Of a stretch of 64,000 bases of DNA, positions 8,646 to 63,709 are shown in pieces. The notes under the pieces were generated by a model. It did no database searches. It saw nothing but the letters and a program-made list of their open reading frames with translations, and was not told the DNA's origin. How positions within the stretch are numbered: the stretch's first letter is position 1; the number at the start of each line of letters is the position of its first letter. The DNA comes from Takakia lepidozioides (lineage: Eukaryota; Plantae; Bryophyta). Position numbers and translations under genes: made by a program. The stretch lies in the NCBI GenBank assembly GCA_030704615.1, contig CM060731.1:92008001-92072000 (forward strand), in the 5' to 3' direction.

Positions 8646-11600
8646 TCAGATTGAAAAGCAAGTATACCATTTGCGGGGTGTGGGAATTGTGTTGTAGATT
8701 ATGTCACCATATTTTACCCCACTCATGAACTTGCCGATAACCAGCTGTGCCGATACTTCCACATCCTTATGTTCCACTTCCTTGTCATGATGGTCCTGTT
8801 GACACCAGTATGATGAGAGTGCAGATCTGAGATGAGGGAAACGAAGAGGCAAGAGAGGGGCTCAGAGAAAGGTAAGCTGTTGGCCAGTGTGACAGATGCT
8901 GTGGCCTTGCAGCCATGGACCGCCTGGGATACAACCCAGTAGGGTGACAATCCTTACCAGGAACTGCCACAGTTCTCACAACAATTAAGATCTTAAGTGC
9001 TGGTCCTCCAAAATGACTGCTAGAAAGGCTACTCATTTGGTAATACCACTGATCATGGCACCCCATCAAAATCAGTTTAACTCAGCTTTCTCTCTAACTT
9101 GCAATAGCCTTGGGGCTGTTATGTTCTGGTGGGAGCCCCTCATGTAAGAGGAGAAAGAGAGACACAGTCAGAAGGCATATTCGAGTGTTAGATGTAGGAG
9201 ATGGCATCGACACCAGGATAGAAATATGGAAGTGAGAGAAGGTAATTAGGTTGAGAAGAATACCTCAGGGTGATGGCTTTTGACTTGAACCAGGCCATAG
9301 TTACGTGCCCGTGTCCAATGGTGGTGTTTGAAGGCATACTCCTGGTCCAGCCTTCCAACCCGTCCTGCGGCTCTCATAAAATAGTAAGCAGATCTGGGAA
9401 GCGGCATATTGGCAATTGCACTTGTGGTCAGCTGTCGGAACACGACCCTGTGGTTCTTCAAAATGTCTGAGTGGCCCCCACAATGCACATCACCTACATG
9501 ACCACATCTTCTTCCTTAGCTTCTGCTTCTGACTAGGAAAAAGCACATGAGTGCCTGTGGGATGATTATGGATTTAATATGGACCTCATAAGGGACAGAA
9601 AGTCTAGCAACCCCTCGTTGCTGTTCCAGCCATGCAGATTCCAAGGTGGCATCACCAATAGAGCCATGAACTTATATCCAGAAGCTTTTCCTGGCAACCT
9701 CAGGATCCAAATGGTCATACTTTCCAACGAGAGGGAGTGCGAGGCAAGGCAGGGTGGAATAGCTCACCTCCAAGAAACAAGACTTCGCGTCTAGAGCGGG
9801 CCGACTTCCAATTAAGCAAACACTGAATCATCTGCAACTGCTCTTTCATGTGCAGGCGGGCCGACCAATGCCCCTTAAAATCTTCCAACCGATGGACGGT
9901 GTTGGCTGCTGTGTTGGTTATATTGGGTTCCAAAAACACAAGAGGGGCAGGTGAGCAAATTAGCAGAGCATGAACCTCATCAAATAAGCCTCCTGAGCCC
10001 AATGATTCTTTGATGTCACCCCATTGGAGGCTTCCCAGATAAGGTTTGTCATCCCCCTTGATACGGTGGAATGTCCGAGAGCCTCGAATGTCCAAAAACA
10101 TTAGCCCCACCCCTCCCACCACATGCAAATGATAGTCCTGTCATTGCCCCAATGTTTGCATACCTTTGTGAGGATGCTGCTTTGGTGCAAAGAAACCACC
10201 TTTCATAGACTGAACAGCAGAAGCACACGTCACCAAGATTGGACACTCCATATGCAAAAGCTGTTCCCTAAGATATGGTACATCCACAAATCAAGGTCAA
10301 TGGAACTCCTATGACATTTGTGATGTTCGATTAACCACGTTTGAAGAGCCTGCACAACCATACGGAATTTGGCAGACTCTCCCTGGAAGTTGCACAGGGA
10401 GGTGCAAAACCCATCATGCCCATGCCCAACCAGGTCCCATTAGGTTAAAAAGGTTAGAGAGTACTTTTAATTTAGTGTCTACTGCTGTCCCAGGTGTGCA
10501 GATGTAGTGCCATACCTGACACCATCCCTCTGGGCTGGATGAAGGACACATATGACCAGTGACAGCTCTTTTGCTGACAAAGAGGACTTCCTATTTTTGG
10601 AAATTGCATATTCAGTGGTCTCACTCTAAGGTCCACCTTCCTACTACAGTACCTTGTTAATTTCATTCAATTTCGAAAAGTCGACGTCCACATGCAGCTG
10701 ACGCTGATATTCCAGGTTCACAATCCAGGCACAACGGGCCACAAAAAACTCAAGGCTCTCTGCATCCCAGTCCTCAGGTACATCCCCCCAGTTATCACGC
10801 ACTTCATGATCATCGTATATCATAAAATTGGGACAGTTGGCAAGACACTTAGCAGTGGGAGGATGCTGCCATGTGTCCCTGTAAACTTCCCGGTATTTTT
10901 CACAGATAGCCTCTTGCTTCATTTTCCATTGGTCTCTAAGCACGCCCTCCAGCATAGCTTTGCCTACGCGAAATCGATCTGACCACTTATCTTGGTCTGC
11001 CCCGGCTTCGGCATCCTGGCGTTTATCCCCATCTCCATATATCTGTAGCCATATACAGGAACTGTGACTAAGAGAGAAAGTGTGTCTGGGTGTGAGAGTG
11101 TGAAGGACAATTGCAATTGCAGTAAAGAGACTATAAGTCAAATCAACGGCCAGGGGGGAAAGGGTAGCTTTTGCAGAAAACCCCTACTTACCTGGTCTCC
11201 AAGATGCACAAGCATGTCGATCTTTCCAGATTCCACAGACTTGGCAAGGTGTGCCCACAGATCTGAATGGATAGGAATGGCCTGTTGAGTGATAAAGATC
11301 TTGTTGCAGCTAATTACGCCGACATTGACAGTGTCAGCAGGCACTCCCGGAAAAGTCCAGAAGCTGCTAGTAATAGAACTTTTGCAGCCTTTCAACTCTA
11401 CATTGTATTTAACAGCTGGTTTCAGATCTGAAAATTGAAATACCCCTGGTCGCATTGCTTCCAGCTCCTTCAACGCTCTTTTTACATGGGGGCGGTGTCG
11501 CTGCTGCTTGGCTGGCCCATTAGAAGTCTGACCCTTTTGTCCCGGTGTTGTTACTAGACTCTCTTGCAGAATTACAGTGACAACACCAGGCTGGTCAATT

Positions 11601-11854
11601 TCAATGAGAATGCGGGCAGTGGTGCTTGTCACCTTGCCTATGACAGGTCCAACCAAAACCTGTGGCTCTATACCAGGTAGGTCCTTCCTCTCCAAACTTG
11701 AGGTCCCCATGATCTTGCTGACCGCACTGAGGATGGAAAGGCGTGCATGGCGCTTGGCAATTTTCCACTTTGAGGGACCAATCTCTCTGGAAGTCCCAAC
11801 ACTCGGAGATTCACTTGTTTCTTGAAATCCATGGTTTTTAGGGGATCTGGCCAT
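8646..11854 (-). CDS. PhoD-like (alkaline phosphatase D) metallophosphatase; exons 11854-11192, 11042-10653, 10137-9768, 9493-9264, 8795-8646 (600 aa)
   Basis: In-phase GT-AG splicing. N-domain motif VGPVIGKVTSTTARI; catalytic motifs ISCN, HLGDQIYGD, YDDHEVRDNWG, FLDIRG and LGGDVHCG match PhoD metal ligands. The choice of last exon is less certain. Confidence 0.88.
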
Positions 11855-14800
11855 GCGGATCCCAAAAACTGCCCTCCAAATTGGACTAGAGCTAATTCAT
11901 ATCTAGGAAGAATATAGACTAAGATCTATCTATATATCTACTACTGTTTTTCGATTTCTCTCATTCCCTTTCCTTACCACATAATACGATTTTAACTACA
12001 CGCGACGAGGTCCCATGAGACATAATCCCTCAAAAAGCTAAATTACAATGCCATACATACAAGGGCTCTCAGAATTCTAGAACTTTGCAAAGCTTTAAGT
12101 ACTAACCCTAAGCTCCCAAGAGAAAGGTTTCTTCAGCACAGCCTCCACTAACTGTACATTCAGTATAAGCAAGCTCTCCACAGCAATCTTTCTTGGAGGG
12201 AGATTCCTGCCAGATCAAGACAATGTTAGAGTATTATGGAGTCAACCGTCTCTTTAAGCTTTGAGTGCTATAGCCGTCTGCCCAGAGTTTGGAGAGCTCT
12301 GACCATGGGGAGGGGCACAGGCCGAGTCCGAATATGGCTGCTACCATCACGAAGTCTCCAGATGTGGCAGTATCTTTGAATGAAGCTGAATGTGGGATTC
12401 GAGATAGAAAGCAGAGAGAGAGGCAAATCATTCCATCTTTCTGGCGCATCATCTACAGGGAAATAAGTGGGGCGTATGTGGAGAAAGGTGGGGGGGCAGG
12501 ACAAGTGGGTCTTCAAGAAGACTGTCTGCAGCGACCACACTCTTCCTACTCACCCATAGCGAGCCCACGAGATCTACAAATATACTTACTGACCACGCTT
12601 CAAAATTGCCAAAGCGTCCTAGCCTCTATTCCCGACAAATGATCCTGTGAGAACAAGGGGGTCCTATCGTGATCAGAAAATGGTTGGCATTGTTTTGCAG
12701 GGGGTGGCAGTTGCTACATCTTACTCTCTCATTGAACGCGAGGGAGGGCCAGACATTACAGTTCTCTGCCAACATCTGCAACACTGCTTTTCCATAAACA
12801 GCTTGCAGCAACTCATCAAGGGGGTAGGGAATCAATGCAAACATTAGACATGGACTTGAAATAGACGAAGCCAAAGGCTGTACTCGACTGCACTTATGAA
12901 GATATTGGGAGGAAGATCACGTGATACGCAGGTGGTAGAAGAGTAGTAAGTGCGGTGACAAATTGAAGCCACCGGAGGAAGGTTGGGAAAAACAAAGCGA
13001 GATCGCAGTCTGTGTACGGTACCACAACTGTGACTAAGAGACAGAGTGAATTAGGCAACAACACATTCATTCATACTGCCATGTGCTGAGAGACGAAGAA
13101 TCACATTTGGAGGCCATATAGAAAGCATACCATCGCTAGACTTGATGATGTTGGGGAGCACGCGGCCTGCTGCAGATATTGCAATCAGATCCAAGAGAGT
13201 GGAACGAGAAGCACAAGGCGACAGAAAGAACCTGAATTTATGCAGAGACAAAATATGAACTTTTTCAAATTGTTCACCTTGCAGTTACAGAGATAGAGAG
13301 AGATACAGAAAAGAAACGAGAAAGATAATCCGATCTGCAGCAATGCCTACACAGGAGGGCAAGCTGGAGCCAACCAAAGTCCTAAGCAATTACATCAAAT
13401 CATCGGCAGAGAAGATTGGTCCTCCAACAAAGGTTCGGTCTGAAACGAGAGAGGGCTATAAAGATAGAAAAGGGGGCCCTACTAGGAATTAGACGGCAAG
13501 CAGCTCTAGCAGAGACACGTTCTACATAGCTCTCTCCCACCCATCATCAAAAACCAGTTTCTCCCAAACTCTGAGGACGAAGGGTTTGCTAACTCCGCGC
13601 GTCGTACTGGGATTCACCCTTAAACCCGCGGACTGCATACCCCTATTATGACACGCCAAAGGAGGTCTATGTCAGATCCTTTTATTCTGGAATAAACCCT
13701 GTGTCAGATCGATTGGCTCGTTGTCAGCTCCTTCCATCATTCAGCATGCACCTACGGTCCATGCATTTGCATTCATGATGGACGAGTCAACTACAGATAT
13801 CAGCACACGCGGCTAGAGGGTCCTTGGACAGTGTTCACAGATGCCATGTTCTCATTGGTTTCGTGAAAACTAGGAAATTTAGCAATAGTTTATGTTACCA
13901 AAAGATTCTCATTGCTGATTCACCATCCCTCAGCACTACGCCAGTCCTCAACTCGTCAGCAAAGTTGATGTTTGTGCAAAGAAGAAGCTTTGGTGCCACT
14001 CTACTTAATTGGAGCGAACGCAGTGGGTTTGCAATGCCCAAACGGGAAGCAACTCTCGACAGGCATATGCCAAGGGATTGGAGGTTTGGAACAGCGTACC
14101 GTGCCTTCACCAACCCCACGCCATCACCACCTGGCTACCTTGCAATGGCGGCTGCAGCGCGCAAGGTGGCATCTACGCGACAGTGGGCCCCGACATGGCT
14201 GTTCCCTATCTCCCTGCCAAACTCGGATTCTTGCCAGCCGTGTGTTATACTCATCGCTCACTTTTATTTGGTTTTCCAGTAAGTCTCGTTTTTGTCGTGA
14301 ACAACCAAGTCCGTAATAAGCGACCAAGCGATTGGAGGGATCGTGTCAGGGTTGTATGCTCAGAAGGTCGGGCCCACATCGCATGCATTTCATACATGTA
14401 TAATTTCAGAAAACCGCGAACCTTCTATGGACCTCCCTCACTTCATGGGACTCGCTAATTTTGGTCCAAGACGAAGTCTTTGCGTGGTCTAGGCAAGTAT
14501 AATTTGGATGAAACCTTATGAGTGACGTCCGACTACGAATTTCCAAAACTGTCTCATGATGGTAGTTAGAGCAGTGAATCATTACTGCCAGGGGAGGCCA
14601 AGCGTGTCATGCTACAGAGTGGAATCGTGGATCCAGGGAGAAAGGGATATCGTACATAACAGGCGTACACAAAATGTTGGAAAGTAACCAAGGACAGGGA
14701 GTCAAAGGGGCTGGGGAAATTGTCCAGAAAGCGGCCAACTTCTCTTCTCGAAGGATGTTAGCAAATTACAATAGGGAATGGTAGGCGTTTCAATGCACGC

Positions 14801-17800
14801 CTGACTGTTCCTCTTTTACACGCAATGTTCATGATGATGATGAAGCGTTGCTTGAACATGAGAGGACTGTCTCGGCACTACAGCCACCATCGTACATATG
14901 CTTCCACTATTTTTGTCTTCTTGTTGTGCTTTCGGGAACCTTCGTTTTATGGTTTGGTTCTATGTCATAAATATGGAAAATGTGGACATCTGTCCTCGAT
15001 AACGTCCTCTGCTTGTGATCCGTCATGATACGTTTAGCCCCTTCGTACTGCATCCCTCGTGAGAGCCTTCACAAGTTTAGTTCGTTAAAGGAACCCATGG
15101 GTAACATGGGCGCGAAAACGGCGGAAGCGTATGCACATGGGGGCGTGTATTGCAGATTTCGTATCGGACGATGGGACTGTTTATGTGACCAAGTATAGCG
15201 GCTTGCATCCTTCGTGTATAAGTTGTGGAAAAGGGTGGAGAATCTGAAGAAACCCAGCTTTGTGATGGATTCACATGGTATTATATAAGGGATGGCAGCA
15301 CAAAAAAACAATTCGAGTCGCCACGGAACACCATCCAGTCCTAAGGTCCTCAAACATCCACACGCACCTGCTGAAATGCAGATGTCCAAGCCACGACGGG
15401 AATAGGTGCAGAATCGGTACATTGTCGCATTTGCCAGGAGACGGACCAGGCTGAGACAATTGCATCTGCAAATGCGCGTGGATGTTTGAGGTCCGTTGTG
15501 CTGCGAATCTGTTCACAGTGGGTCCACTGGCCCGTCAGTGCTCCGGATATTCCCCTTATCACGTGCATAACAGTCAGTTTGGAGGCGGTCTGCTGGAAGT
15601 CCGTCTGTTGGGATATCAGTCTGGCGCACTTGTGAATTTGTCAGTCTGTTGTGTCGGAAATCTGTTGTAGTAAGTCTATTCGACTTCTTATTTTCCCTCC
15701 GGTCAGTCTTTTGGCTTGTTCTCCCGCCAGTCTGACGAAACATCCATCTGCTGGACAGTTCTCCTCTATGGATATCAGTCTGTTGGACTGTGCATGCATC
15801 AGTCTGTTGTGCCGCGAGTCTGTTCGACTTTTCTGTTCTCCCCTTACTCTCTTTTGTCTTCATTCCGCCCGCTTCTTTGCAAACCAGTCTGCTGAACTGG
15901 AGGTGTGCTCGACAATCATTCCCCGATGGATATCAGTCTGTTCGTCTGGTATTTTGTCAGTCTGTTTTGCTGCCAGTCTCTTTGCAGTGTGTCCGCTGGC
16001 AGGGAAGTGCCTCCAATATGAAGCCGCTTCGCCTCAGCAAAGCGAACAGTCCGCTGGACTGGCGGTCCGCTGGACTCTCGGCCCGATGGGAAATGAGAAG
16101 GACAAACTCTTCTGTCTCTTCTGTGAAGAGTTTATCAAGGACAAAATCCAACTAAATCGGCATTGTGTTGACACAGGTTGCAAGGAGACTGTTGCAACGA
16201 TTCCATGGGATTTCAAGCCTTGGCCGATACTGAAAGAAATGTCGATTGTCAAAGAGGCCACAATGCGCATGCGCGGATCAGTGCTTGACCCCCGCACTTT
16301 GGAATTAGACAAAGTGCGCGCACGGTATGGCGTCCATTCTGGTGGCCCGTCAATGGAGGATTTGCAAGTGCAGGGAACGCCAGATGCTGCCAGAAAACGT
16401 AAACTGAGTGATGGGGCCCAAAAAAAGGAGAGGCAAAAAAAGGAGGAGGCTGCAAGGTCTGCTCGCAAAGCAAGGGCAAAATCCACGCAGCAGACTGAAC
16501 CCCGTCCTGGGCGGCAGACCCACACCATCAGTACTGATACTGAAAGTGAATCTGCTCAGGGCGGGCAAACCATTATCCGGAATCATGACTTCAAAGGCCT
16601 GGAAGGGGTGACAAGTCCAGTGGACATTGACTTGCCTGACCAGACTGGGCAGCAGACTCACACAAATATCACAACCCATGCCAGAGGTTTAGGGTCAAAA
16701 CCAGAAACTCAACAGAGCACTGAAGGGCCAGTCTGCCCTGGCACATTGCGCCTCGTTGACTTTGGGCTTTTCCCACCAGAGTGCCCACCAATTGGGGATC
16801 CAGAATTCTTCCGTTATTTCTACAGAGTTGCCCAGTCAGGTCTGCTACGCACATTCATCCGACAGGCAGAACAGAACTGGTTGAACAGCTTTGAAGATGA
16901 AAATGACGACGAAGAAGTAGAGGAGGTAATGGTCAGTCTGACCGCCCAGTCTGTTCTCTGTGTTGTTTGAGTCCATCATGGGGATCACGTTGCCTATTCT
17001 GTTTGGTCAGTCCGATGCGTTCTCTCCTCAGTCCGCTGGCTCAATCCGCTCGTTAGTTAGTCTGTTTTATATCGATGCATTACTTACTGAGTCCGTTTGT
17101 CAGTCCGCTGGTTACTGGTACAGTCTACTAGTTGGCTCCACCCTACGTACGCACGTTACGTCTGTCAGTCTGCTGGTCTGTGAGTCCAGTCCGCTGCATG
17201 AGGTGAATATAGACTCCACGTCCAAGTTCTCTGCCGTGTACCAGGATGAACATGTTTCTATTCGTAGGGCCATTCAGGCTTGGCGGATACATAGCAATGA
17301 TGCTCCTTTTTAAGTGACTGTGGTGCGTACGGAAGTGGACCGCGTGCGGGAGTACATATTATTGAAGTATCCTGGGTCATCTGCTGCTATAGTGACATTA
17401 CATATTCAAGACGCGTCGGGGGGGAATGCGTCTGGGACAGCCGAGTCTGCCATCCAACAGACTCCCATTCAGCAAGCCGTCATCCAGCAGACTCCCATTC
17501 AGCAGCCTGACATCCAGCAGACTCCAACGGAGCAGACTCCCAACGAGCAGCCTGTTATCCTGCAGACTCCTCTCCAGGAGCCCATCATGCAGCCCATGCC
17601 AATGGGAAGACCTGTCATCCAACAGACTGCGGACCAGCAGACTGACATCCAATAGACTGACAGCCAGCAAACTGAACAACAGACTGTCTTTCTCCCACAT
17701 AGCACGACGCTTTTTGCAGTTTGGCGATCGTCATCACCGGTAATTGGACCCGGAGCTGAAGACCTCACCGTCGGTGGTCATTTGTACCCTTTCATTATTC

Positions 17801-20284
17801 CATGGAATTTTCTATTGAGGCAGATAGATGCAATTTGGCAATTTCCGCTTGTACAACAAGTTGATGAAGGATCTGCATAGTTTGAGGCTCCATGGAACAG
17901 ACCATTCACAGAAGTTTGTGGTGGATGATGCATTGCAGTGGTTTGCATTGGTGATGGAGCGAGCAGTATTCGACATTGTTTTGCAGAATCTCAATGTCTT
18001 CAAAGTCCTGTGGTGTGGGACCCCAACTGAAGACCGCATCGGCGCCATTGCGCATCTCGATGGAGCATGCCTATGCCGGCAAATCAAGGACATTGGCCTC
18101 GTCGGAAATCTCTTGGAAGGTAAAATGTTCTGGGCAACTTTCGTGTTTCAGCTCCATTTCTTTTGCCAACTTTTTTAGAAGTTCACATTTGCAGAAACAT
18201 GTGTTGCAGGGCGAGTTGATCTGGGAGACAAGCAAGTGCAGGCTGCTTTCGACTCTTTTGCCAGAGGTGCAAGGGACCTTGTCCTGGCTTTACAAAGAGT
18301 TCGGGAGACTGTCCAGCAGACTAGCCACGAAAATGTCCAACAACATATTCCCCACGACACATGTGGGTAGACTGCCCAAGTGCTGGAGACCGAGCACGTG
18401 CACCAGACCGTCCCGGGTAATAGGCCGGACCACTCCCAGCAGACTGCTCAGTATGTGCAAACAGTACTGAGCGGGCAGCGAACTTTGCAGACATTGCAGC
18501 AGACCGGCCAACAGACTGCCCCTCAGCCGACTGTGCAGCAGACCAGCGAACATGGCCAGCAGACTGCCCCTCAGCAGACTGTGCAGCACATTGGCGAACC
18601 CACTCAGCAGATGGCCGAGCAGACTGTCCAAGAGACTAACAGCCAGTTTGTTCTCTGGATTGTGCAACAGACTCGGATGCACTGGCCTCACCGGGACCCT
18701 TTCTGCTGAGTTCCCAACAACATGTTTTTGGATCTGCCAGTATGAGTGTTTTGAGCAAGTCCACTTTTCCCCCAGACACATTCACTGACAACATCATCAA
18801 GTCACTGGTAAAGCATTCTTATCCAGCTCCCCGTGGCCTACCTTCTATGACCTTCCAGCTCAGTCCCGTTTTCGTGCGCTCAGTGGCGAAAGCCATAGAT
18901 GAGTCTTACGTGATGACCGAACTCAATCTGGGAACGCAAAATCGTATCATAGATCTTACAGAAGAGTCTGAGGAAGCAATTACCGGTGGGTCTTCCATAC
19001 ATGTTCTTGATGTTTCTCAAGTCCATGGAGATCCGAACACCCAGCTGGCTGTCCACCAGACTGACCAACACACTGAACAGTCGACACATGGAAGGACTGC
19101 CGAGCAACCTGTGGCGGGGCAGCAGACTGTCTTAATTGATGAGCAGACTGAACTGCGGACTAACCAGCAGACTGTACAGGTTACAGAGGGAAGGACTGAC
19201 CAAGATGGCCCGGAGCGGCAGACTGCATAGCTCAGCTCCGACTGCACGACCTGACCAGCACACTGCATACTTCACAGAAGGAAGGACTGACGACCAACCT
19301 GCCACCGAGCACACTGCCCACATTGAGGAAGAGCCTGAACCGCAGAGTTGCCAGCAGACTGCACAATTCACAGACGAAAGGACTGACGAAGAACATGCGG
19401 CGCAGACACCGTCTGCTATAGCGTTGGATTACATGGAGTCTGCTCCCTCACCCCTTAGGCAGGTTGTGCCATTTCCTCTTTCAGCACTGTTGTTTATGTT
19501 TTAGCACATTGTGAAATTGGGCTAATTCACCATTTTGCTCGGTATTCTCACAGGATGTTCGTCCCTCCGTCGGCAAACTGTCTACTTCTGAGGACATAAC
19601 ATCTTCCGCCCATGCTGCAAACGTGGGATCGACAACCAAGAAAGGTGTGGGGGTGAGCACGCCCCTCGATGCGCGGGTCAGTTCTACGCATGCGACCCAC
19701 GAAGCTGCAAAGACAGGTCCAGCAAGTGTGGACAAACCTGCTGACCAGCCTGTAGAGTGTTTGGTACCATGTTGACGTCAGTCTGTTCAGTACATGAGGC
19801 TTCCCGAAGGATGGTCTGCTCTGTGCAGGATGGGTGCTCGGTTTGGCAAAGCACATGCTCTGCACGTCAAGGCGGGTAATTCCATGCTGATGTTTTTTGA
19901 AGGGGACCCACAGTTTGAATGCGGACTGTCGCCGGATGACATAAAGGCCTGGGGGGTGCACTCTTTATAAAATGTCCGTATCACGTGCGTTCGCCGCCTA
20001 ATAAAAAAACCCCCTGTATACGGGTCCTTGGATCATTTATACCCCCTCTGTACATACATTTTGAAGATTATAAAACCCCCTCCTGTAAATATATAGAAAT
20101 TTTTAATTTTTAAAAAGTACAGCCTTGTGTATGTATATTTTCATTTTCAATAATTAAAAAATACCCTCAAATATGTATATGTATGTTTTTATATTATATC
20201 AAGTTTATTCATTTAAAAATAGAATAAAATCTAATAAATTAATTAGAAAAAATCTGTTTGCCCTCGATAAAACTTGCTGTGGAA

Positions 20285-20560
20285 TCTCACTTTGAACAAT
20301 AATCAGATGCAGAGAGGAAAGGGACATTGTCAATGCCCGATGTGCAAGAGGCCTGAAGAAAGTTTCCATTTTCTGATATACAGTCCATCAAAGAGTGACC
20401 CTCTTGAAGACCATGAAGACCTAGTCACTGCACCTCTGTTCATCAACTAGGACAGTTTCTGAATTTGTTCTACAGTTTCAACCTTCGCAATGTCCAATTA
20501 TGTTCAAAACCTATTGTTGAGAATTCCTCTCCAAAAAGAGATTTCGTGCGCCTTTGCTGC
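20285..20560 (+). mobile_element. LINE 3'-region fragment (same family as 61372-63665)
   Basis: CTTTGAACAA...CAGAGAGGAAAGGGA...TGCCCG...CCTGAAGA...CATTTTCTGATA aligns by eye with 63230-63420. Confidence 0.75.
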
Positions 20561-20632
20561 CACTGTTGGAGTCCAACCTGACTCGCAGCTGACAGAGTTC
20601 AATACATTCAATTAGGTGACAAGCATTTCATT

Positions 20633-23600
20633 TCACCAATACTCCCCACAAGAACAAACACCATTTTGGAAGTGGTGAAAGCGGTTTGCATCCCGTACAA
20701 CAATCTCTTGCTTAGGTATCTTTGAGATGAATTTGGTGGCTGTGTGGCAATCACCACACATCCGAAGATTCCTGATGATCCCCAAAGACATCCCAGAGGG
20801 TGTGTTGATAAGCCCAAAAACATGGCCAGCTTCTCATTGTGGTGGCAAAGAGACGATTCTTTAAGCTCTTCCTCAACATCATGCAATGCAAAGCGGGCTT
20901 CACCCCTTCGCACATCATTTGCTCATAGGTCTCCAAAGCCTCCATCCCGCGCCCTTGCTGTGCATATCCTGCAATCATCGCACTCCACGATAGCGCATCT
21001 TGTTCAGCCATACCGTTGAACACTCCCTTCATACATGTCCACGAGGGTATTATTCAGAGTGACATTTGATACAATTGCAAATCTGACAATGTCGCCATGG
21101 TCCTCTTTGCCCTTTTCCAGAGCTGACAGGCTTGCACACACATTGCAAATGTACACAAACGTGATGTGGTCGGGCTTCACCCCTTCCCCCATCATTTGAT
21201 CATAGGTCTCCAAAGCCTCCATACCACGTCCATGCTGTGCATACCCTGCAAGCACCGCACTCCACGACACCACACCTCGTTCAGCCATGGAAACTCCCTT
21301 CGCATCCTTAATGCACCCACATTTGGCATACATGTCCACCAGGGGAGTGTTCAAAATGACATCTGGTACAATTCCAGCTTTGACAATGTCACCATGGACC
21401 TCTTTCCCCTTTTCCAGATCTCGCAGGCTTGGACACGCATTGCATTCTGCCAACATTATATTCCACGTGATCAAAGATCGTTGAGGCATTCTGTTGAACA
21501 CTTGGTGAGCATCAATGATGCTCCCGCACATAACATACATGTTGACAAGGGTGTTGAGTAGAAAAACATTGTGGACTCCCTCTCTTGATCCTCTTTCAGA
21601 AGCTGTGGTCATGGTTGAGGTGCCTGATTTTATCAACTGTGCCGCTGCAGTTGCTGCCTTTAGTTTACCATCTACCCATGCAGGTTTCTTGTAGCTACTG
21701 ACCCCCACATGGAATCAAGGTAATCTGGAGCTTGAAGTCCAGCCCTCTTGGATGAATCTGGACCCACACTCTATCCATGCTCATTCAGGAAAAAACAGGG
21801 AAAAACTTTGATAACAGGGAAAAACAAGCTGAAATGTGTTGAAGAATGTACCTTCATTAGCAGCGCCTTGTTCTATCAAATGCACTGCTGCCGCTGCTGT
21901 TTCCAGTTGACCATCTACCCACGCAGCTTTCTTGTAGCTATTGATCCGCAGGGAATCAGAAGTAATCTTGTGTTTAAAATTGACCTCTTGGATGAATCGT
22001 GTTCCTCGACACCACCTCGTTCAGCCATAGTGTTGAACAATCCCTCCGCATCCTCAATGCTCCCACAATGGCATACATGTCCACAAGGGTATGGTTCATA
22101 ATCACATCCGGTACAATTCCAGCTTTGGTGATGCAACCATGCACCTCTTTGCCCTTTTCCATGGCTGCAGGCTTGCACACGCACTGCAAAGCACACAAAC
22201 ATGATGTGGTCGAGCTTCACCCCTTCCCCCATCATCTGCTTTCAGGTCTCCAAAGCCCCATCTCGCGCTCCTGCTCTGCACACCCTGCAAGCATCGCATT
22301 CCACGACACCATGTCTCATTCAGCCATAGTGTTGAATACTCCCTTGACATCCTCAATGCTCACAAATTTGGCATACATGGCCACCAGAGCAATGTTCAGG
22401 ATGTCATCTGGTACAATTACAGATTTGATGATGTCACCAGGGATCTCTTTGCCCTGCCCTTTTCCAGGGCTGCCAGACGCATTGCAAACGCACACAAATG
22501 TTATGTGGGCGGTTTCACCCCTTCCCCCATCATTTGCTCATAGGTCTCCAAAGCCTCCATCCCGCACCCCTGCTGTGCATACCCTGCAAACATCACAATC
22601 CACGACATCGCATCTCGTTCAGCCATAGTGTTCAGAATGACAGGTAATCTGACAGGCATTCACCTTTTTGTATTCACCTTTTTGCCTCGGTTGTCCCACC
22701 ATTGACTGGGGTCAGAAAAGTATTCATTCCACAGCTTCTCCTCATCTCTGTTACCTCTTTTAGGATACTTTCATGTTGTCAGTTGGGAGTATCATGTCAA
22801 AGTCACTCCAAACTATCAAAGATTCACTCAACCAGCTAACTTGCAGAATTCAATATGGATATTTAGGGCCGATTCTGATAAGAGGGAAAAACAGGGTGAA
22901 ATGTGTTGAAGAAGGTGCTTTCATTAGCAACGCTTGATTTTATCAATTGTGCCGCCGCTGCTACAGCTTCCACTTGACCATCTATCCATGCAGGTTTCTT
23001 GTAGATAATCATAGGTAATCTGGAAAATGGCTCCTGGCAAATCACCTTCATCTTCCCAGACAATCTTCTCAGCTCAGCATGGATTTCCTTAATTCTGGGA
23101 TGCAACTTGTCATCTACAACGAAGGTGTGCACCCTGTTGCAAACCTCAATGCAGCAGCGACTTGGCTCCTTTACAACCCCTCTGACCTTCATCATTCTTC
23201 TCACCTTTACAGTATCAACCCACCTGCCAGCTACAGCATAGATGTTTGATAGCAACATAAGTCGCGGCATCCTGTTCATTCCACTTGAGGATAGATGTTG
23301 CCGCACGTTCAGGTCCACTGCCTCATCCAGTTGTCCCGCATGTCCAAGAAGGTCCACCATGCAGCCAAAGTGCTATACTGTCGGAGTGACACCATGATCT
23401 TGAATCAGGGAATCGAAGTAGCGTCTTCCTTCATTCAGAAGGCCAGTGTGGCTGCATGCAGAGAGAACACAAACTGCTTCAAGCCGTTCTTTTGCAATAG
23501 TTGCAGGACCTCCCTATGACAACCATGCTGTGCATATCCTGCGATCATTGCATTCCACGACACCACATCTCATTCAGCAATATTGTCAAACACTCCCTTT

Positions 23601-24662
23601 GCATCCTCCATGCACCCACATTTGGCATACACGTCCACCAGGGCAGTGTTCAGGATCACATTTGGTACAATTCCAGCTCTGACGATGTCGACATGCACCT
23701 CTTCGCCCTTTTCCAGGGCTGCCAGGCTTGCACACGCACTGCAAACGCACACAAACGTGATGTGGTCGGGCTTCACCCCGTCACACATCATTTGCTCATA
23801 GGTCTCCAAAGCCTCCATCCCACGTCCCTGCTGTGCATACCCTGCAAGCACCGCACTCCACGACACCACACCTCGTTCAGCCATAGTGTTGAACACTCCC
23901 TTTGACTTTGTAAATGAAGATAGGTCCCTTTGATGGGGCATGGATTGAAGTGGTTTCGCAGTCCTACTTGTTGTTTCCTCCTCGCCATGTCCATCTTCTG
24001 CTTTGGGGCGGGGTCTAGGGCTGGCAAGGTTTTAGCAACCAGTGTCATGACTCTCTCTCTCCTCCTCTTTGTTCTGCCCAATCAGGGTGCAGGGTCTATG
24101 GCCACAAGGCTATCATGAGTACTTTCTCCCTCACACACACCTCTCCCCGTTCCGCCCAAACTGGGCACGGACTGGGTAAATGGCCACAATGCAATGGCAA
24201 ACGTCATATGAGTACATTTCGCTCTCTCTACTCTTGGCAATAGACTGAAATTGAAATGCAGGTCGGGGAGTGTACCTTTGAACAAACAAACAGATGCAGA
24301 GATGAGAGGTAGCCTGTCAATGCCCGACGTGCGGGAAGCTTGAAGACTAAACATTTTCTGATACATTTCCGGTGTACACTCCCATCTGAGAGCGACCCTC
24401 TTCACTTACATCAAGAACAGATCCTTGCACGGTTGTTCGCCAAGATGCACCCACATTTTGCAAACATGTCCACCAGGGTATTGTTCAGAATGACAGCTGG
24501 TACAATTCCAGCTCTGAAGATGTCGCCATGGACCTCTTTCCCCTTTTCCAGAGCTGCCAGGGCAGTGTTTAGAATGACATTTGGTACAATTCCAGCTTTG
24601 ACGATATCCCCATGCACCTCTTTGCCCTTCTCTAGGACTGCCAGGCTTGCACGATGCCACAT
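20633..24662 (-). pseudogene. Scrambled, frameshifted fragments of PLS-class PPR-E-DYW RNA editing factor gene(s)
   Basis: Repeated PLS triplets (VVSWSAVLAGYAQHGRGMEAL...GVKPDHITFV...LVDMYAKCG), E/PG-box region (LLSNIYAVAGRW...GVVKEPSRCCIEV, 23040-23360) and a DYW domain (HHNEKLA, frameshift, [11 protein letters not shown]...[20 protein letters not shown], 20633-20895). Confidence 0.92.
23905..24405 (+). mobile_element. Head-to-tail stack of short 5'-truncated LINE copies
   Basis: Three successive 3' ends of the type GGGTC(T/A)ATGGCCACAAGGCTA...ATGAGTAC+(TC)-rich tail, ending near 24062, 24140 and 24229, each followed directly by another fragment of the same LINE. Confidence 0.75.
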
Positions 24663-26434
24663 CTTGTTCAGGCATCTTCGCGGAAGGGAAGGCGAACGCG
24701 GGAGAGGAGATGAGAGGAGGAGAGGGAAAAGAGAAAGCCGCTAGAGGGAAGGGGAGAAAGATCGCGGGGAGACAAAAACAAAAAACAAAAAACCAAACAA
24801 AAGGAATTGATCCCGCGGTGCATCGCAACCTAATCATCATTCTTACCACTACACTACCCCTGAAAACTCAACAACCCCCTCCTGTAATATTATATTTAAG
24901 GTGTTTTAAATTCCCCTCTATATGTATAATGTTGTACATGGGGGGGTTTAAAATACCCCCTCCTGTGCACGCACGTGGCTGGTACATTTAATGAGGAGTG
25001 CACCCCCCAGGCATAAAGGCGCTCCAGAAGGTTGAGTCGGAGTGCATAGATAGACTCCTGGAGCTGTGGTGTCGATTCTATGAGAAGTCAGTTGAGGCTG
25101 CGTTCACCAACACTATTGTTGTTCTTCCAACGTCGACGTGGACGGTGTTGAAGTCATTGGGGGTGGGGCAACGTGAAAGCCTTCTGGAGGTCTTCAAAGG
25201 TTGCCTCAGCACTGAACGACTGGGCAAAGACTTGAAAGAGTGCGATTTCATTTTGGTACCAATTGGGGACGAGTAAGAACTCTTCCGAGTCTGCTGAGAC
25301 TGTCTCCTGAGTCATAGTCTGGTTTCGCAGTGTCGTCTTGACTCTGAGCGATTAAGTTGACCTCTATATTTGTCTAGTGGACTGGGTTTGAAGATTGAGT
25401 CTGCTGAGTCAGCTGAGTGCTGAGTCTGCTGAGTGGTCGGTCTGCTGAGTGTCAGTCCGCTGAGTCTGCCCATCATGATTGTGCAATGATGTCATGTTGT
25501 TTGATACCATTGCAGGGGGCACTGGAGTGTTTGTATCATCGACCTCCGCAAGGGCTGTTACACTCACCTGACCTCTATCAGGGACTCACATAGTTGTCCC
25601 TTTGTTCTAGGGTGGATTCGGAAGCTTCATGCTGAGTGCTTAGGGTACTTGATGGACTCACTGGAGTGGCACGAGATTGTCCAAGCATTTCAGTTCCACG
25701 CGCCTGATGTGCCCCAGCAACCATTCAGCTGGGAGTGTGGCTTTTACGTCATGTCATTCATTCAAGTGTTTTATGAGTGGGCAAAAGTCAGAGGAAATGT
25801 CTCCAAGACTGCAAAGCCAGAGAGAGGAACACCTTTCACGAAGGACTGGTTTACTTTCAAGTTTGCACTTGGGCAGCGAATGCAGTGTGCCCAGTATATC
25901 GTGCGGGGGTTGGACAATCTAGAGAAACTGCTCTCATGAGTATGATGTACTTGTCATGTGAAGTCTATGTACCAAAATAAAAAATGCGAGTATTTTCGCT
26001 TACTATTCCAGTGGCGATGAGCACTTTTGTGTACTGTGGGTGCTGGCATGTTTTGTAATGTTGTCACTAAAGTCAATGGACACAATGGTGTCAATTTTTC
26101 CATGCACTGTGCACCCGAGTCTGCTGAGCTTGAATGTGCGAGCAGTATGCTGCCGAGGCTGGGACTCGTGGGTCTGGTAGGCACCATGTCCATGAGTCCA
26201 CTTGGACGCTGGATTGGCATGAGTCGTTAGGGAGGTAGTCCACTGGGACCCTGTCCATTTTGAGTCTACTATTGTGGATGAGTCTACTTGAGACTTAGTC
26301 TGTCTAGCAGTCTGCTGGGAGAGTTGCATGGATGAGGTGGGAGTGTGGTGAGCAGACGTTTGGAGTGGACAACAAACTAGGCAGCAGACTGACCAGCATA
26401 TTGGCTTACTGGCGTGCGCAGTCTGCTGACTGTG

Positions 26435-26565
26435 ACTCTGTTGGGAGACTGTGCGTGAGTCCGTTGGGAGACTATGCAGGAGTCTGTTGGGAGACTGTGT
26501 GGGAGTCAGTTGGGAGACTGGAAGAGTCCGTTGGGAGACTGGAAGAGTTCGTTGGGAGACTGTGC
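26435..26565. repeat. ~21-bp tandem repeat (GAGTCYGTTGGGAGACTG core)
   Basis: GTTGGGAGACT recurs six times at about 21-bp spacing. Confidence 0.85.
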
Positions 26566-26602
26566 ATGAGTCCATTGCGGACTTGTATTTCAGAAATGGA
26601 CA

Positions 26603-26977
26603 ATGCTACCAGAGGAATTGCAGACTTATATTGTCTTCTTCGTGACACCTACACGACCTGAAACCTTGCGAATTTTCGAGTATATATGTGCTGCAGGTGC
26701 AGGTGCAGACACCCTCTTGCTGGTTCTCCGCAAAACCCTAGGCCGGGTTTTCCAGGCCTCCACGAAATCTCGTCTCCTTTTCAGAGACATGTTGTTGTTG
26801 GTCGTTCAGAGGACGGAAAGCCTTCGCTGCCGCAGGGTGCAACATTCCAGCCGCACTTTTCGCCAGGATATCAACGAGCTGCCCTCTGCACATACGAAGA
26901 GCAGATCGGGCATGTGCCTCCAGGTATTTGTCATCACCTACAATGCAAAGTATGTCCGCGAATTCTTGTTCCATTGA
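26603..26977 (+). CDS. Small TE ORF beginning with an F-box-like motif
   Basis: The start MLPEELQTYIVFFV resembles the LPxEL...I F-box consensus. The remainder is unrecognised. Confidence 0.3.
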   Translation: MLPEELQTYIVFFVTPTRPETLRIFEYICAAGAGADTLLLVLRKTLGRVFQASTKSRLLFRDMLLLVVQRTESLRCRRVQHSSRTFRQDINELPSAHTKSRSGMCLQVFVITYNAKYVREFLFH

Positions 26978-28207: not shown

Positions 28208-29011
28208 CCCTTAACTTCCTACGCGACCCAATAAGGGTCGCACTGTTGGACCCAACATCGTAACATCTGCAGATGAAGTCTTTTGTCATCCATTTCTTCT
28301 AAGCATTTATTGCAGATGCGGTGGCTCCAATTTATTGCATGCCATTTGGAGCAGGCAGGCAATCTCCAGATTTTTTTGAAGGGACACGAATTAGAGAAGG
28401 ATGGGTGAAGGAGAGTGGACTAGTGACCCCCTCATTGGGCCACCCCAGATGCTACTCGACCTATATGAATTTAGGTTTTCTCCATTAGATTCTCTTGAAA
28501 ATTTGCCTAGTGCTTCAAGGTGTCCTAAGACAGCCCCTCACCATAGGGATGTGTTTAGTCACAGTTTTTGGGATGACATGTTTTGGAGGACATGTTCAGG
28601 TTTGTATATGCTTGTTATGGATGGACATGACAACCATACAAAGCAGCATATGTAGGAAAATGTTGGTTTGATGTGAAAGTTGGCATGCACTTTATACTTG
28701 TGCTATACATTAAAATTTGGGGTAGGCCTTTTGGAAAACTCAAAAAGCCCTCAACAAGCTTGGTCAAAGCAAATAAAGGTTTATTTCAAAGCAAAAATAA
28801 AAATAAAAACTTTCCCAAATAAACAATATAATCTCTCAAATTCAATGGTGGAATTGCTTAAAATTTGGGGAGATGGTGTAGAGGCCAAGTAGGTATATAG
28901 GTGTATGGTTCATTTTTGTGGATGAATCTTGGTAGGTAGGTAGCCTCCCATTAGTTCCAAGGGGTAGTACTTTTTGAGAGTGAAAATTTTTACCTTGTAA
29001 GAAGTTAAGGG
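28208..29011. mobile_element. Non-autonomous piggyBac-like element (804 bp)
   Basis: TTAA|CCCTTAACTTCCTAC ... GTAAGAAGTTAAGGG|TTAA: 14/15 TIR match, CCC/GGG termini, TTAA at 28204-28207 and 29012-29015. Confidence 0.8.
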
Positions 29012-30546
29012 TTAAACCACGTGCCTGCCCTCTTGAAAAGAAAGTAGTTAGAGAGAGACCCATCCAATGCAGTGCAAGCCCTGTGAAAGTCCTCTTATGC
29101 GTCTATGCTCGGTATAGAGGTTTAGAGCAGCCGGTGTCCACTCATTTTGCTTGCTTTCATGAGAGATCATGGGTACACACCACCATACAAAGTTAACCAG
29201 CGACAATGATGTGGTCACTTGGAAAATTAGGGGTTAGAAATCACAGACAACAGTGGGCCAAACAATGACCAGTAATCCAGGATCATCTTACAATGATCCT
29301 AAGAATGAAATTTAATATCAGGTATGTCATCACTTTACTAGCCTAGCCAACAGTCGGTAGTTTGTGTAATTGTTGGAAATTGGCCCTCTAACAGATTAGG
29401 CGACATTTTACTGCATCACTGGCCACATCCTCTCAAAGACCACATCTAGGTGGAACCAAACGGACTTGCAATGCAGAAAACAGGCATCATGGTCAACTGG
29501 TTGGAAAGGTCTGGAGAACAACTATCAATCACTCCAAATTACAGTTTACAAATTCCTGAAGAGAAGGCTCAGGAAGAGTTAAGAGTGATCCTTGAGGTCC
29601 AGCCTCATCACAAAATAGGTAAGAGTTACTAATTTTTGCCTTCCCTAAGGGCACCAATAAATCACAGGAACAAGCACCCTGACAGCTGACAAAGCTGGGG
29701 AAAAATGCCAAAGCCAGTCCTTGCATACCATCAACCCAGCTGGCACCTCATTGGGAAAAGGATGACATCAAAAAAATTCAGACTCATTATTGATTCCTTA
29801 TTGGTGAGAAATCATCATTGGACTTGACTTTGTCAGAACTGCCTCAGCCTAACTGTGATAACAAAAAACTCATGAGAGCTGTACTCAACCATCTAAAAAC
29901 ATACCCTTTGTCAGAACTGACTCAGCCTAACTGTGATAACAACGACATAGCTAGGGGTGTGATGGCCCAGGAAAATCTGTAGATATCCCATGAATTAGGC
30001 AATGTGGGTAAGTTTCTGATTCACCACTGGCACCATCCCAGAACCCACCCAACCTTTGCCTAAGGAAGGGGACAGTAGCTCCCCATGTGCATCCTAGTGA
30101 AAATGATCTACAGAAAACAAACCTTCAAAAGTACAACAACTTTTCTGAAAGTTATGCTCGAAGTTAAACCATATGCACTGACATAGTGGCAATTATTGCC
30201 TACACAAGAAGTCCCAAGGTTTTTCAGAATTTTGATTTGATGATTATGGAAGTTATCCTTTCCTTTCCTTGTAAGTTCATTCACACAGTGCATGAGATGT
30301 GACAGAAAGCAAGCACGGGCTTAAGAAATCAGCCTGAATAACACACATCCCGGCACATATCTCAAGATACAACTTGCTGACACCAGAAAGAATTAAGTGC
30401 CATAGATTAAGAGGCAATGCATAGTTACACCGAAGGAACAGCAGCTGCCAGGAACGTGGAGGGACCCATGATACCAGTTGGCCTGCAGCAGACAACTTCG
30501 AATTAGTGTCCATAGACTGCTATCTCAGCATACAACTGCAACGAGC

Positions 30547-32694
30547 CTAAGCAGACGATGAAGCACCACTTCGCAGACGAGCTTGCGGTTTCCGTGGCCT
30601 CCGTGGAGCAATCTCAGCCTCAGCCTGCCAAATGGAAACACCAAGAAATCGATTAAGCATTAAGATACATGACAAAAGAAAACACTACGTGAAACAAACA
30701 GAAAATTCTATCTTCATCTCTTGGCAATCTGCAACCACCCTATCTGCTAGTTCCCCTACTAACACTGACTGACTCAACAAGCTAAGAGAGCAGCTCTTCA
30801 AGTAAAGACAGATACTCCTTGTGAATAAAGCTTGCCATATCTTCCACAAACACCCACCCTATCTGCTAGTTCCCCTACTAACACTGACTGACTCAACAAG
30901 CTAAGAGAGCAGCTCTTCAAGTAAAGACAGATACTCCTTGTGAATAAAGCTTGCCATATCTTCCACAAACACCCCCCCCCCCCCCCCTGCGGCAATAAAT
31001 GGAGCCCGTTTGGCCACATATCAAACCACACCTCTAGAGTGAAATGTCAAAACTCACCTCTTTCTTTACCGAAACCTCCTTCTCAGAGAGAGTAAGCTCA
31101 ATGTGGCACGGGGAGGACATGTAAGCTGTTACCCCATATTACAAACACACAAGTCATATACGGTCTATACAGTTGCATACAACCATACACATTATCTCAT
31201 GAGAAAGAGTGGACATAGAATAGTTTCAATGCCTATTGCACCATCATTTTCCTAGACCACTCTTAAACTTAAGCATCCGAACACTCCCCAATTCAGACAT
31301 GAAATTGAAGCAAGACCCAGCCAGATTAAAAGACTAGGGAGAGCATTCGCACGATTGATTCGCCCATGGGCCCGGTATGTCCGCCGGCGTTGTTTCTGTG
31401 CCTTGTTGACCTGAATGTGAGAAACTATGAGGGTGTCTACATCCAGTCCCTTCACCTGCCCACCGGAAACCAGTACCACATACACAACCCCTTCAGGTCA
31501 CACCACACCAGTATGGAGAAGAGGCAAAATAGTCCTTATGCGAGAAAAGAGTAAATGTGAAAGTTGAGATGAACAAACCCAGAGAAAAACAGTGGCTCCA
31601 ACAATGACATGAATAAAGAGGATAGAAGTAACACCTCAGCATTGCTCTCTGCATTCTTCAACAAGCCAAGCAGAAAGGTAGCAGACTTCGCAGGCCACCG
31701 TCCCTGCCCATTAGAATGTCGCGACTTGGCCTGCGCAGTCCGCCCAACCCCACCACAAAATCGGCGGAAAGGAATGGCTTGCTTGCGAGCAAGCACATCC
31801 TCAAGGTAGTGCTTGGCCGTTGACAGCTCCAGCTTCTTAATTCCCTGCGCTGTCTCTCTCGTGTTCTGCAGCAACAACAGGGAAAAATATTATTCAGACT
31901 GAGGTGCATGAATGTCAATGTCACATTTACCACCCGGAAACAAGCTGGTTATAGGGCCCTAACAGTATCCCGGAGGAACTCCACAGATGCTACCAGGACA
32001 CAGCTCTCCAATCCTGCTACCTTTCAATGAGGAGTTTCCACTACCATGGGTAACTAACGTGGACCCTTAAAAGCCTGCCCAACTGCGTAATGAAAGATTC
32101 CGGTAACGTCCTCTTCTATTCGGGAGGCCCTGTTTCACCTTCAGTTTTGTAGCATCATACCTTGAAATGGACGCGGAGATCCGACCCTCTGGCTTTACAT
32201 GCTGCACAGTCAAGAAACCAACAAAGGCGAAATTAGATTCCAGACCGTTGAGTATGTATTTGACATGCAGCCGTGACAAACAAAGCATACCTGCCTTGAA
32301 AAAATTAACCCTACACTGTACACAAGACTCACACTTGGTGGGATTGTCAGGTTCCCTTGCGTACTTAACCTGCGCCATGCCACCACTACCGTCAATTCTC
32401 AACCAAAACTTCCCACTAGATCAAGACCTTCTCACATTGAAGAAGTCAGCGACAAAGAAGAGAGGCTGTTCATTTCCTTGTACGTCAAGACCAGATCGAC
32501 ACTTCACGTAGCAGTCCTGCACAGATACAGGACATCGAACAACGCACGTAGACACCAATACAACATCCAGAGAGCCAGTAAGAGGCGAACAATCGCTCAA
32601 AGCTGTTTCCAACGTGCAGCGCAGGTATGTACACCAACACAACGACGATCAGAAGCAGAAACCAAGCGTGAATACAAAGAAGGCAACGTACCAT
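30547..32694 (-). CDS. RPL17: 60S ribosomal protein L17 (uL22); exons 32694-32692, 32369-32333, 32201-32161, 31865-31635, 31455-31353, 31125-31058, 30624-30547
   Basis: Spliced product M|[13 protein letters not shown]|[13 protein letters not shown]|NTRETAQ...[10 protein letters not shown]...GRWPAKSA...NAESNAE|VKGLDVD...[13 protein letters not shown]|[10 protein letters not shown]...; all introns GT-AG and in phase. Confidence 0.97.
30735..30972. repeat. 119-bp near-perfect tandem duplication in the last RPL17 intron
   Basis: CCACCCTATCTGCTAG...TTCCACAAACACC occurs twice with period 119, followed by a C run. Confidence 0.9.
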
Positions 32695-33268
32695 GGCTGC
32701 AGGCGGCCGGGCGAAGGGCCGCTGAAAAGAGAGAGAGAGAGAGAGAGAGAGAGGGTGTTCAGTGTGCACAGCAGTTTTAGGTTTGTCCAGGCCAGATCAC
32801 GGGTAGGGTTAATACCTTGTTCGCAAGACGTTCTCACACTATGGGTACACCAAGCGCAAGTGAAAGTTTAGGTTCGTGATGTGGTACGGCTAAATTTCAA
32901 CTGGTTCGGTCCGAACCTCACGTTATGGCCATCGCCTTTTGTCAGCAGCTTCACGCTCTCTCCTCTGGCTGTTCGACGGATCGTGTTCCATTGAATTCTG
33001 TGAGTTGATGTTAGGTTGAGTCATTCACAGTACCCGTCTGGTACTCTTGGAAATCAGTAGAAAGGTGGTTTGTTTGCAACGTATGGCCGTGATTCTCGTT
33101 ACATGTCGAGGGAGTGTCCAATCGATTGTAAATTCTTTGAGGCGTCGGGAACAGGAGGAGAATTGCGTTCCGAAACACTAAACTGTTGACAGAATTCAGA
33201 TATAAATCTAGGCAGGATCATGTGAGTTGCGGAGAAGTAACGAAGCAACCCATTCTGCAAGCGGGGAT
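32695..33268. promoter_or_regulatory. Probable bidirectional promoter region between RPL17 and the RH18-like gene
   Basis: Divergent start codons are separated by 574 bp. A (TC)n leader lies on the RPL17 side and a telo-box-like TAGGGTT at about 32804. Confidence 0.55.
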
Positions 33269-38646: not shown

Positions 38647-39228
38647 CGACGGGAAGTTTTGTAGATGAGACCCAGAATTGAGCTACATTCTGGGGTCCTC
38701 CTGGAACTAGACCAACTATGCTGCTTACAGTTGCATATTATGAGAAATGCTTTGTCTAGTATCCTACGCATTGGCTGCTGGCATGGAGTACTTCAAATCT
38801 TCCGATTTTATGGCTGTAAATCTCTCGGCTGTGCAAACATTGGGTGATTCTCTCCAATCCCAATGGCCTTATGCCCTCAAAGTTCCATGTCATATGTTAT
38901 TGTGGAATCTGACTGTAAACCTTGTTGTCAAAGCTGGTGATTCTCCATGGTGATGGAGTGCCCGGGGAGTTGAATGCTCTAACAGCCCCGTCAGCGCCCC
39001 CAGCCTTGGCCCACCCGGCCCTTGCCTGGGTGAGCCACTCGCCGCGGTCGCATTGCCGACCCCGGTGCAGTACATCACTACACGAGTAACATCGACCCTG
39101 ACCCCCTCCCAACTAAGTTTCAGCTTCTTCTTTTTTCTTTTCTTTTTTTAAACAAATTTAGAGAACAGGAGACAAAGGCCCTGGAAAATTTATTGGCTCT
39201 GTCCCTTCAGGGCAGAGACTTTGCATCG

Positions 39229-42455: not shown

Positions 42456-42497
<42 letters not shown>
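41645..42497. repeat. Tandem array (~8 units) with GTGATGGTCGG-CA-CCGACCATCAC palindrome and poly-A spacers
   Basis: Unit GATCGGCGGCACYGACAGAAGTGATGGTCGGCACCGACCATCACATCCACCCAAATGCCGAATGTCAAAA; a perfect palindrome lies at 41807-41830. Confidence 0.88.
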
Positions 42498-44549: not shown

Positions 44550-44606
44550 TGAATTCATGAGGTGAAATTTTCTTGCCAAAAGAGTTTGTTTCAAAGTTGC
44601 TAGATG

Positions 44607-63659: not shown

Positions 63660-63709
<50 letters not shown>

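Follow-up and report, generated by a model that had tools for sequence, protein, structure and literature searches.

Pack-TYPE transposons (Pack-MULE, Pack-CACTA and Pack-hAT) are known across the superfamilies of DNA transposons that end in terminal inverted repeats (TIRs). They have been surveyed in Arabidopsis, rice and maize (Gisby and Catoni 2022, PMC8903248), in a text that does not mention pentatricopeptide repeat (PPR) cargo. Here we analyse an element of this kind in the moss Takakia lepidozioides, within a window of 64,000 nucleotides (contig CM060731.1, positions 92,008,001 to 92,072,000). The element spans positions 19948-25011 of the window (5064 bp). As occurs with the Pack-TYPE elements, it is non-autonomous, bounded by TIRs and a target site duplication (TSD), loaded with captured gene fragments and, by our reading, multicopy. 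Unlike them, its gene cargo comes from one expanded family, that of the PLS-DYW RNA-editing factors, lies in a single orientation and is accompanied by snippets of long interspersed nuclear elements (LINEs).

Other described systems resemble it in part. The maize hAT elements Ds2 and Ds-l4 (PMC3260210) have a short TIR, an 8-bp TSD and a repeated subterminal motif, carry filler DNA in place of the transposase and often lie within repetitive DNA, but their TIR and motif differ from those found here, and gene-derived filler is described as rare in Ds. Grapevine Cactavine-5 (PMC2528002) is also a TIR transposon with part of a PPR gene, present in more than one copy; unlike this CACTA element, which has its own transposase open reading frame (ORF) and one PPR piece, the Takakia element is without transposase and holds many PLS, E, DYW and PDF (Pro-Asp-Phe) pieces. 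As in the FoSTeST multicopy Pack-TIRs (PMC8277862), a shared chimeric interior appears to have been spread by transposition, with short homology at a breakpoint. However, those cases are animal, and one of them, Ssk-FB4, has a near-complete gene, whereas the moss cargo is broken. Taken with the results below, we read the locus as a non-autonomous, multicopy Pack-TYPE DNA transposon of hAT-like anatomy with a mosaic editing-gene cargo, and put the probability of this reading at roughly 0.78.

Ends of the element and its empty site

The perfect 16-bp TIRs and the exact 8-bp TSD reported in a first-pass annotation of the window are present, with the direct repeats abutting both ends:

19940..19947, plus strand: left TSD copy, 8 bp; seen as a direct repeat and at the empty-site joint
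19948..19963, plus strand: left TIR, 16 bp; a weaker likeness to the right end extends to ~44 nt
20006..20087, plus strand: three left subterminal copies of a C-run/TGTA motif, with a possible transposase-binding role by analogy with Ac/Ds
24873..24967, plus strand: right subterminal copies of the C-run/TGTA motif
24996..25011, minus strand: right TIR, 16 bp; record 23 of contig run X6 matches to 25011 and then has another flank
25012..25019, plus strand: right TSD copy, 8 bp; direct repeat

The TIR pair does not occur again in the window at up to 2 mismatches. The arms of the element are 82% complementary over 44 nt, and the alignment of the ends fails past ~44 nt. By a rough estimate, about 1e-5 such combinations of TIR and TSD would be expected by chance in 64 kb.

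Excising the element with one 8-bp repeat restores a reading frame, as claimed earlier and recomputed here. In support of this, the same joint exists in public contigs. We compared four contig runs: X1 and X5, from independent studies, and X6 and X7, which are RNA-type runs, 'RNA' being a label guessed by the tool. Uninterrupted copies of the Ulp1-region target were looked for and found in two X1 contigs and in one X5 contig of 347 nt with 4 differences, which pass directly from 19939 to 25012 and skip 5072 nt.

The boundaries, previously held to be well fixed, are not so at the locus alone: its sequence agrees just as well with a TIR of 17 bp and a TSD of 6 bp, and at the empty-site joint nine letters can be assigned to either side. 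The X6 contig mentioned above favours the 16+8 parse. It matches 24848-25011 and continues with 76 unrelated letters, a divergence that marks 25011 as the end and points to a putative second insertion site of the same element end.

The cargo and its sister sequences

The interior had been described as PLS repeats, an E/PG box and a DYW deaminase domain, with no recognisable transposase. Pfam confirmed these components, with PPR, E, E+ and DYW pieces above its cut-offs, and no transposase piece was seen among the interior ORFs; but the interior also contains PDF motifs, LINE pieces and unassigned DNA, so that the first-pass observation was partly confirmed, the insertion being real and the description of the interior incomplete. 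A PLS profile detected 14 pieces in three frames, which amount to 2079 bp or 41% of the element, and PPR, PDF and LINE pieces together account for the interior except for ~0.35 kb. On the minus strand, beginning at the right TIR, the cargo opens with L/S fragments, an opposite-strand LINE, the unassigned segment, ~1.3 PLS triplets and E/E+, and goes on with PDF pieces, two broken triplets, two PDF halves, PLS, the DYW core, a 3' flank and a LINE. In window order:

20290..20448, plus strand: LINE fragment (ORF end with Cys/His motif), opposite to the PPR cargo; loose contig ends at 20290 continue as LINE
20449..20635, minus strand: donor-gene sequence past the DYW stop codon (3' flank), assigned by position; contig 11 of X5 joins the LINE piece and the DYW end
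20636..20895, minus strand: DYW deaminase core (HxE, CxxC, EYW end); PF14432 in two frames, with PDB matches
20896..21633, minus strand: pieces of PLS repeats; among them, a 507-bp block (20940-21446) interrupts a P motif
21622..22020, minus strand: two PDF-motif second halves and linker; candidate splice donor at 21851-21850, then a pyrimidine-rich tract
22017..22632, minus strand: two degenerate PLS triplets with several frameshifts and stops
22666..23040, minus strand: PDF pieces by profile: a first half (22666-22740), a degenerate half and the third of the second halves (22932-23007)
23050..23498, minus strand: E and E+ motifs (PF20431, PF20430), degenerate PG box and first helix of the gating domain, with an internal stop and a deletion
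23489..23902, minus strand: best preserved PLS run, ~1.3 triplets with one stop, by Pfam and profile
23903..24071, no strand: unassigned segment; exact match in a high-depth contig (X1 record 6, X5 record 13)
24072..24443, plus strand: LINE 3' tail repeat, then a second LINE ORF-end piece
24438..24652, minus strand: two tandem L/S motif fragments with an 84-nt period

At 60.8 and 63.2 kb of the window lie LINE copies to which the three snippets are 70-78% similar (73-78% for the piece at 20290-20448). Since the internal PPR repeats are at most 89% alike, they are not fresh internal duplications, and we rejected that source for them. Outside the element, a 64-nt piece at 1359-1422 is 81% like the degenerate PDF half at 22790-22853; other PPR sequence lies far away.

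This cargo is broken throughout. The longest ORF in the element has 236 aa. The E+ motif ends at ~23040 and the DYW core starts at ~20895, with 2.15 kb of other pieces between them and the break within the gating domain, the part of the DYW deaminase described, with its zinc ligands, in PMC7611903. The DYW core is without the first half of the gating domain, and it has a frameshift at ~20821. It retains the zinc ligands (HxE and CxxC) and the DYW-type motif at the C-terminus, but split over two frames, and the preceding P motif runs into it out of frame. Nowhere does one frame unite a PLS array with E1/E2 and a complete DYW domain. Because of the gap between E+ and DYW, the DYW frameshift and ORFs of at most 236 aa, the copy at 19948-25011 cannot make a working editor. 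The proposal of the first-pass annotation that the element could expand the PPR family and create new target specificities was therefore not borne out: no complete PPR-DYW protein is encoded, and no intact gene was seen inside these TIRs.

Contigs with alleles other than those of the window cross the cargo junctions. One X5 contig (20278-20695), with alleles foreign to the window, spans the LINE piece, the 3' flank and the DYW end; another (23875-24472), with a non-window allele, spans PPR, the unassigned segment, LINE and PPR. In addition, the left subterminal region continues into the LINE piece in an X1 contig (20214-20386, ~90% alike). Since these contigs carry non-window alleles across the junctions, sister sequences share several of them, and sister copies very probably share the mosaic, which contradicts the idea that the cargo exists only at this locus. 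In X1, alleles private to the window have a depth of 60-150, interior contigs ~700-770 and the empty site 1624, values that we read only as 'several copies', contig depth not being copy number. Together, these results strongly indicate a multicopy family that would have moved together with its mosaic interior.

The window copy also differs from its relatives in structure. In X1, X5 and X6, related contigs pass from 20939 to 21447 via 29 other letters, which by arithmetic complete an in-frame P motif of normal length; the 507-bp PLS block present in the window copy is absent from them, and its right joint lies in register within another P motif. The simplest reading is that the block was gained by template switching between similar repeats, which would have broken the frame. 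Note that the relatives without the block, either Pack copies or ordinary genes, have an X5 depth of 11.5 versus 12.6 for the DYW-LINE contig. With the exact empty site, the second flank and the shared cargo junctions, this block upholds the earlier view of a TIR transposon that mobilises and shuffles editing-factor modules; as a whole, the earlier interpretation is partly supported.

The PDF region bears on how the cargo was captured. Just inside the candidate splice donor, site 21847 is far rarer in both RNA-type runs than the neighbouring sites: the X6/X5 depths are 130/579 at 21847, 1130/147 at 21884 and 12979/591 at 21948, and X7 is alike. A low RNA-type depth next to a candidate donor would mean that the element kept an intron, and hence that capture occurred at the DNA level. 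This is suggestive only, the RNA label being guessed and contigs a poor gauge of level.

Database searches with the cargo pieces, one by one, found the closest relatives in Diphasiastrum, in proteins where a PDF motif precedes PLS repeats and an E or E-DYW end follows. The relatives include KAJ7517631.1 and the cluster of KAJ7542975.1 (Diphasiastrum) and KAH8950713.1 (Sphagnum). The protein searches returned no same-species donor, the closest matches being 40-48% identical and from Diphasiastrum. A PDF profile built from the Diphasiastrum and Sphagnum PDF-PPR proteins matched 22666-22740 (independent E-value 6e-11) and 21898-21981. The PDF motif signature has been described in the OSB single-stranded-DNA-binding proteins (PMC6963530), and the cargo motif (~50 aa, Pro-Asp-Phe) appears to carry this OSB-type signature, as judged through the PDF-PPR profile. 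Neither Pfam nor the Atlas gave a name to the PDF pieces.

The cargo shares its kinds of motif with the PDF-bearing PLS-E-DYW editing factors of Diphasiastrum and Sphagnum; unlike their intact long frames, the element has fragments only, in scrambled order. The possibility that the element made the PDF-PPR fusion was rejected, since both Sphagnum and Diphasiastrum have intact PDF-PLS proteins; the layout is therefore native and old. A single literature search gave no published description of this layout. Intact PPR proteins with a PDF motif, PLS repeats and E(/DYW) (among database proteins P0001, P0175 and P0200) occur in Diphasiastrum, and the layout is conserved across Sphagnum species.

The Ulp1-carrying host repeat and the rest of the window

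The element is flanked on both sides by parts of a longer repeat:

15600..19939, plus strand: left part of the host repeat, painted with AGCAGACT; decayed orphan ORFs; 3-4% diverged from a second copy (L001), with deletions
25020..26650, plus strand: right part of the host repeat, with a Ulp1 (peptidase C48) catalytic exon at 25505-25936 (PF02902, E-value 1.9e-10)

Between 15.6 and 26.6 kb, the 8-mer AGCAGACT occurs 25 times in the 6.7 kb outside the insertion, compared with 2 times in the other 52 kb and 0 inside the element. The second copy of the host repeat, L001, is without the window's deletions, and the window stands apart from almost every contig at several positions of the flanks. A length-limited search with the Ulp1 exon gave no match, a blank that carries no information. 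The insertion target is a decayed copy of a multicopy Ulp1-carrying repeat, and consequently no host gene was knocked out. The earlier placement of the insertion in a Ulp1 gene needs correction: the element is nested in a decayed multicopy repeat and not in a host gene. In agreement with a younger insertion, the element is less diverged from its X5 relatives (0.9%) than the host repeat is from its own (2.2%; Fisher p 0.02).

The host repeat resembles the Ulp1-carrying MULE and CACTA elements (PMC2528002) in being multicopy and having a peptidase C48 exon; unlike them, this copy yielded no TIRs, termini or transposase of a named superfamily. Across 15600-26650, AGCAGACT is found on both strands, in coding and non-coding sequence, a painting that resembles a VANDAL-like self-motif layout. 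One orphan ORF has a Cys/His motif; Atlas matches to the host-repeat orphan ORF were uninformative.

Other features of the window are the following:

60700-64000: LINE pieces arranged in a chain, with an 83-nt repeat as 3' tail that terminates in (TC)n; one truncated copy after another begins directly after a TC run
28210-29015: segment of ~800 bp bounded at either side by inverted ends ttaacccttaacttc; it may be a small non-autonomous TIR element with a site of the TA/TTAA type
40400-42500, 43990-45420 and 51700-52630: tandem arrays with units of 64-278 nt, short palindromes and A-runs
10600-11900, 31500-32400, 33200-39600 and 54170-54950: apparent host genes, by eye only (phosphatase/PhoD-like, ribosomal protein L17-like, DEAD-box helicase-like, proline-rich ORF)
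30735-30978: tandem duplication, 119 nt, 99% identical

The arrangement at 60700-64000 suggests that this LINE may insert into its own TC tail, and it recurs inside the element at 24072-24443. The three tandem arrays look like subterminal arrays of other DNA transposons.

Classification, competing explanations and bearing on PPR expansion

With TIRs and a TSD, no transposase and an interior of host-gene fragments, the locus has the make-up of a Pack-TYPE element. Short TIRs, 8-bp TSDs and subterminal repeats are hAT features (PMC10741241, PMC3260210). The 8-bp TSD, the 16-bp TIR (within the 5-27 bp of hAT elements) and the repeated subterminal motifs of our element agree with this anatomy. The TIRs of hAT elements usually start with (C/T)A; ours has the ends CC..GG, and because of this atypical start we did not file it as a hAT member. 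A long TIR of the MULE type, often >100 bp in Pack-MULEs, was rejected since the alignment breaks down after ~44 nt. A scan of the JGI metagenomes for the TIR had no match at a length of 20 nt and 119 single ones at 16 nt; these are chance matches, because the next 29 bases match at background level.

The element entered one copy of the older Ulp1-carrying repeat through a staggered 8-bp cut. We propose that a transposase made elsewhere, probably of the hAT type, would bind the TIRs and the subterminal motifs and move the element in trans. The cargo may have been assembled at the DNA level by recurrent template switches in the course of gap repair or replication, in the way proposed for multicopy Pack-TIRs (PMC8277862). 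Such switches could be eased by the likeness among PPR repeats, so that a first PPR piece inside would draw in more of the same family. In the resulting nest, the end of a PLS-E-E+-DYW gene would have been split within the gating domain by 2.15 kb of PDF and PLS pieces, with the 507-bp block added later to the window copy. The usual product would be pseudogene-like PPR sequence.

Several points weigh against this reading. The CC start is unlike that of hAT elements, and no partner transposase was found. No whole sister copy was readable in the contigs, so the link between TIR and cargo elsewhere is a chain of overlapping short contigs, and the depths that suggest several copies do not measure copy number. 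Among the contigs listed, none bridges either filled junction. No donor loci were identified in the Takakia genome, and the short CCC shared at the PPR-to-DYW joint was gauged against the expected DYW sequence instead of a known donor. The absence of a bridging contig, together with the difficulty of assembling PPR repeats, would be expected of an assembly artefact; but a misjoin would not place a perfect TSD directly against perfect TIRs at a site that is in frame when empty, and contigs of an independent study cross the interior junctions, which makes an artefact extremely improbable. It is also very unlikely that an empty or small TIR element was filled in place, or that two small elements bracket an immobile PPR pseudogene. 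Single-copy Pack-TIRs in animals did arise mostly by gap filling (PMC8277862), and the missing full sister copy fits this explanation, but the entire 5 kb lie within a single TSD pair and an exact empty site, the interior is free of the host 8-mer, and the junction-crossing contigs carry non-window alleles at several times the single-copy depth.

An assignment of the same Pack element to another superfamily deserves more weight, although we hold it for less probable than a hAT-like origin. It could be a short-TIR MULE (with a 9-bp duplication and uneven ends), a KDZ/Zisupton-type element (8-bp TSD) or a member of a family with 17-bp TIRs and a 6-bp TSD. The nine letters that fit either side of the joint and the alternative 17+6 parse leave room for these, as does the atypical CC start; MULE TSDs measure 7-12 bp (PMC10741241), and that of Zisupton is 8 bp (PMC12730594). 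On the other hand, there is no long TIR, and the X6 contig stops matching at 25011.

The remaining explanation keeps the transposon and changes its role: the family would be a real engine of PPR gene birth, with other copies intact, expressed and carrying reshuffled arrays, and only the window copy dead. In support of this, related contigs in 4/4 runs have one extra base at 20821, which gives an intact DYW frame, and relatives have the in-frame P motif at the place of the 507-bp block. Moreover, an RNA-type contig is 99% identical to 20718-20895 with its frame intact, and in an RNA-type run the stretch from DYW through the 3' flank to the LINE has a depth of ~80-145, the host repeat being near zero. 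Finally, intron loss in Takakia, at 52%, is the lowest among PPR-rich species and leaves room for a DNA route (PMC13386178). However, the RNA-type contig diverges at 20895, so it may stem from the donor gene, and the RNA label of the run is the tool's guess. In the window copy, 2.15 kb separate E+ from DYW and the frame breaks at the PPR-to-DYW joint, and captured fragments are usually pseudogenes (PMC13317346). We consider this role doubtful, and prefer the Pack-TYPE transposon with a broken mosaic cargo.

The expansion of PPR genes in seed-free plants is currently explained by dispersed duplication through retroposition, a model that Takakia, with its intron loss, fits least well (PMC13386178). 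Our literature search, which left subscription papers mostly outside, turned up no description of a TIR family filled with PPR-DYW pieces in any PPR-rich seed-free plant. Our results indicate that DNA transposons do copy and reshuffle PPR-DYW gene material, although the window copy itself makes no editor. That the TIR transposons of Takakia are a source of new editing factors, in which PLS blocks are swapped in register and some copies are intact, transcribed PDF-PLS-DYW genes with a new RNA target, seems unlikely to us; if true, it would add a DNA-level route to new editors beside the published retroposition model. PPR counts in Takakia may also take in fragments carried by transposons. Copies that are dead may still, if maize gene capture is a guide, be a source of small RNA or methylation against real editing genes. 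A multicopy transposon full of PPR-DYW pieces thus offers a second possible route for PPR expansion, one that is testable in the published genome.

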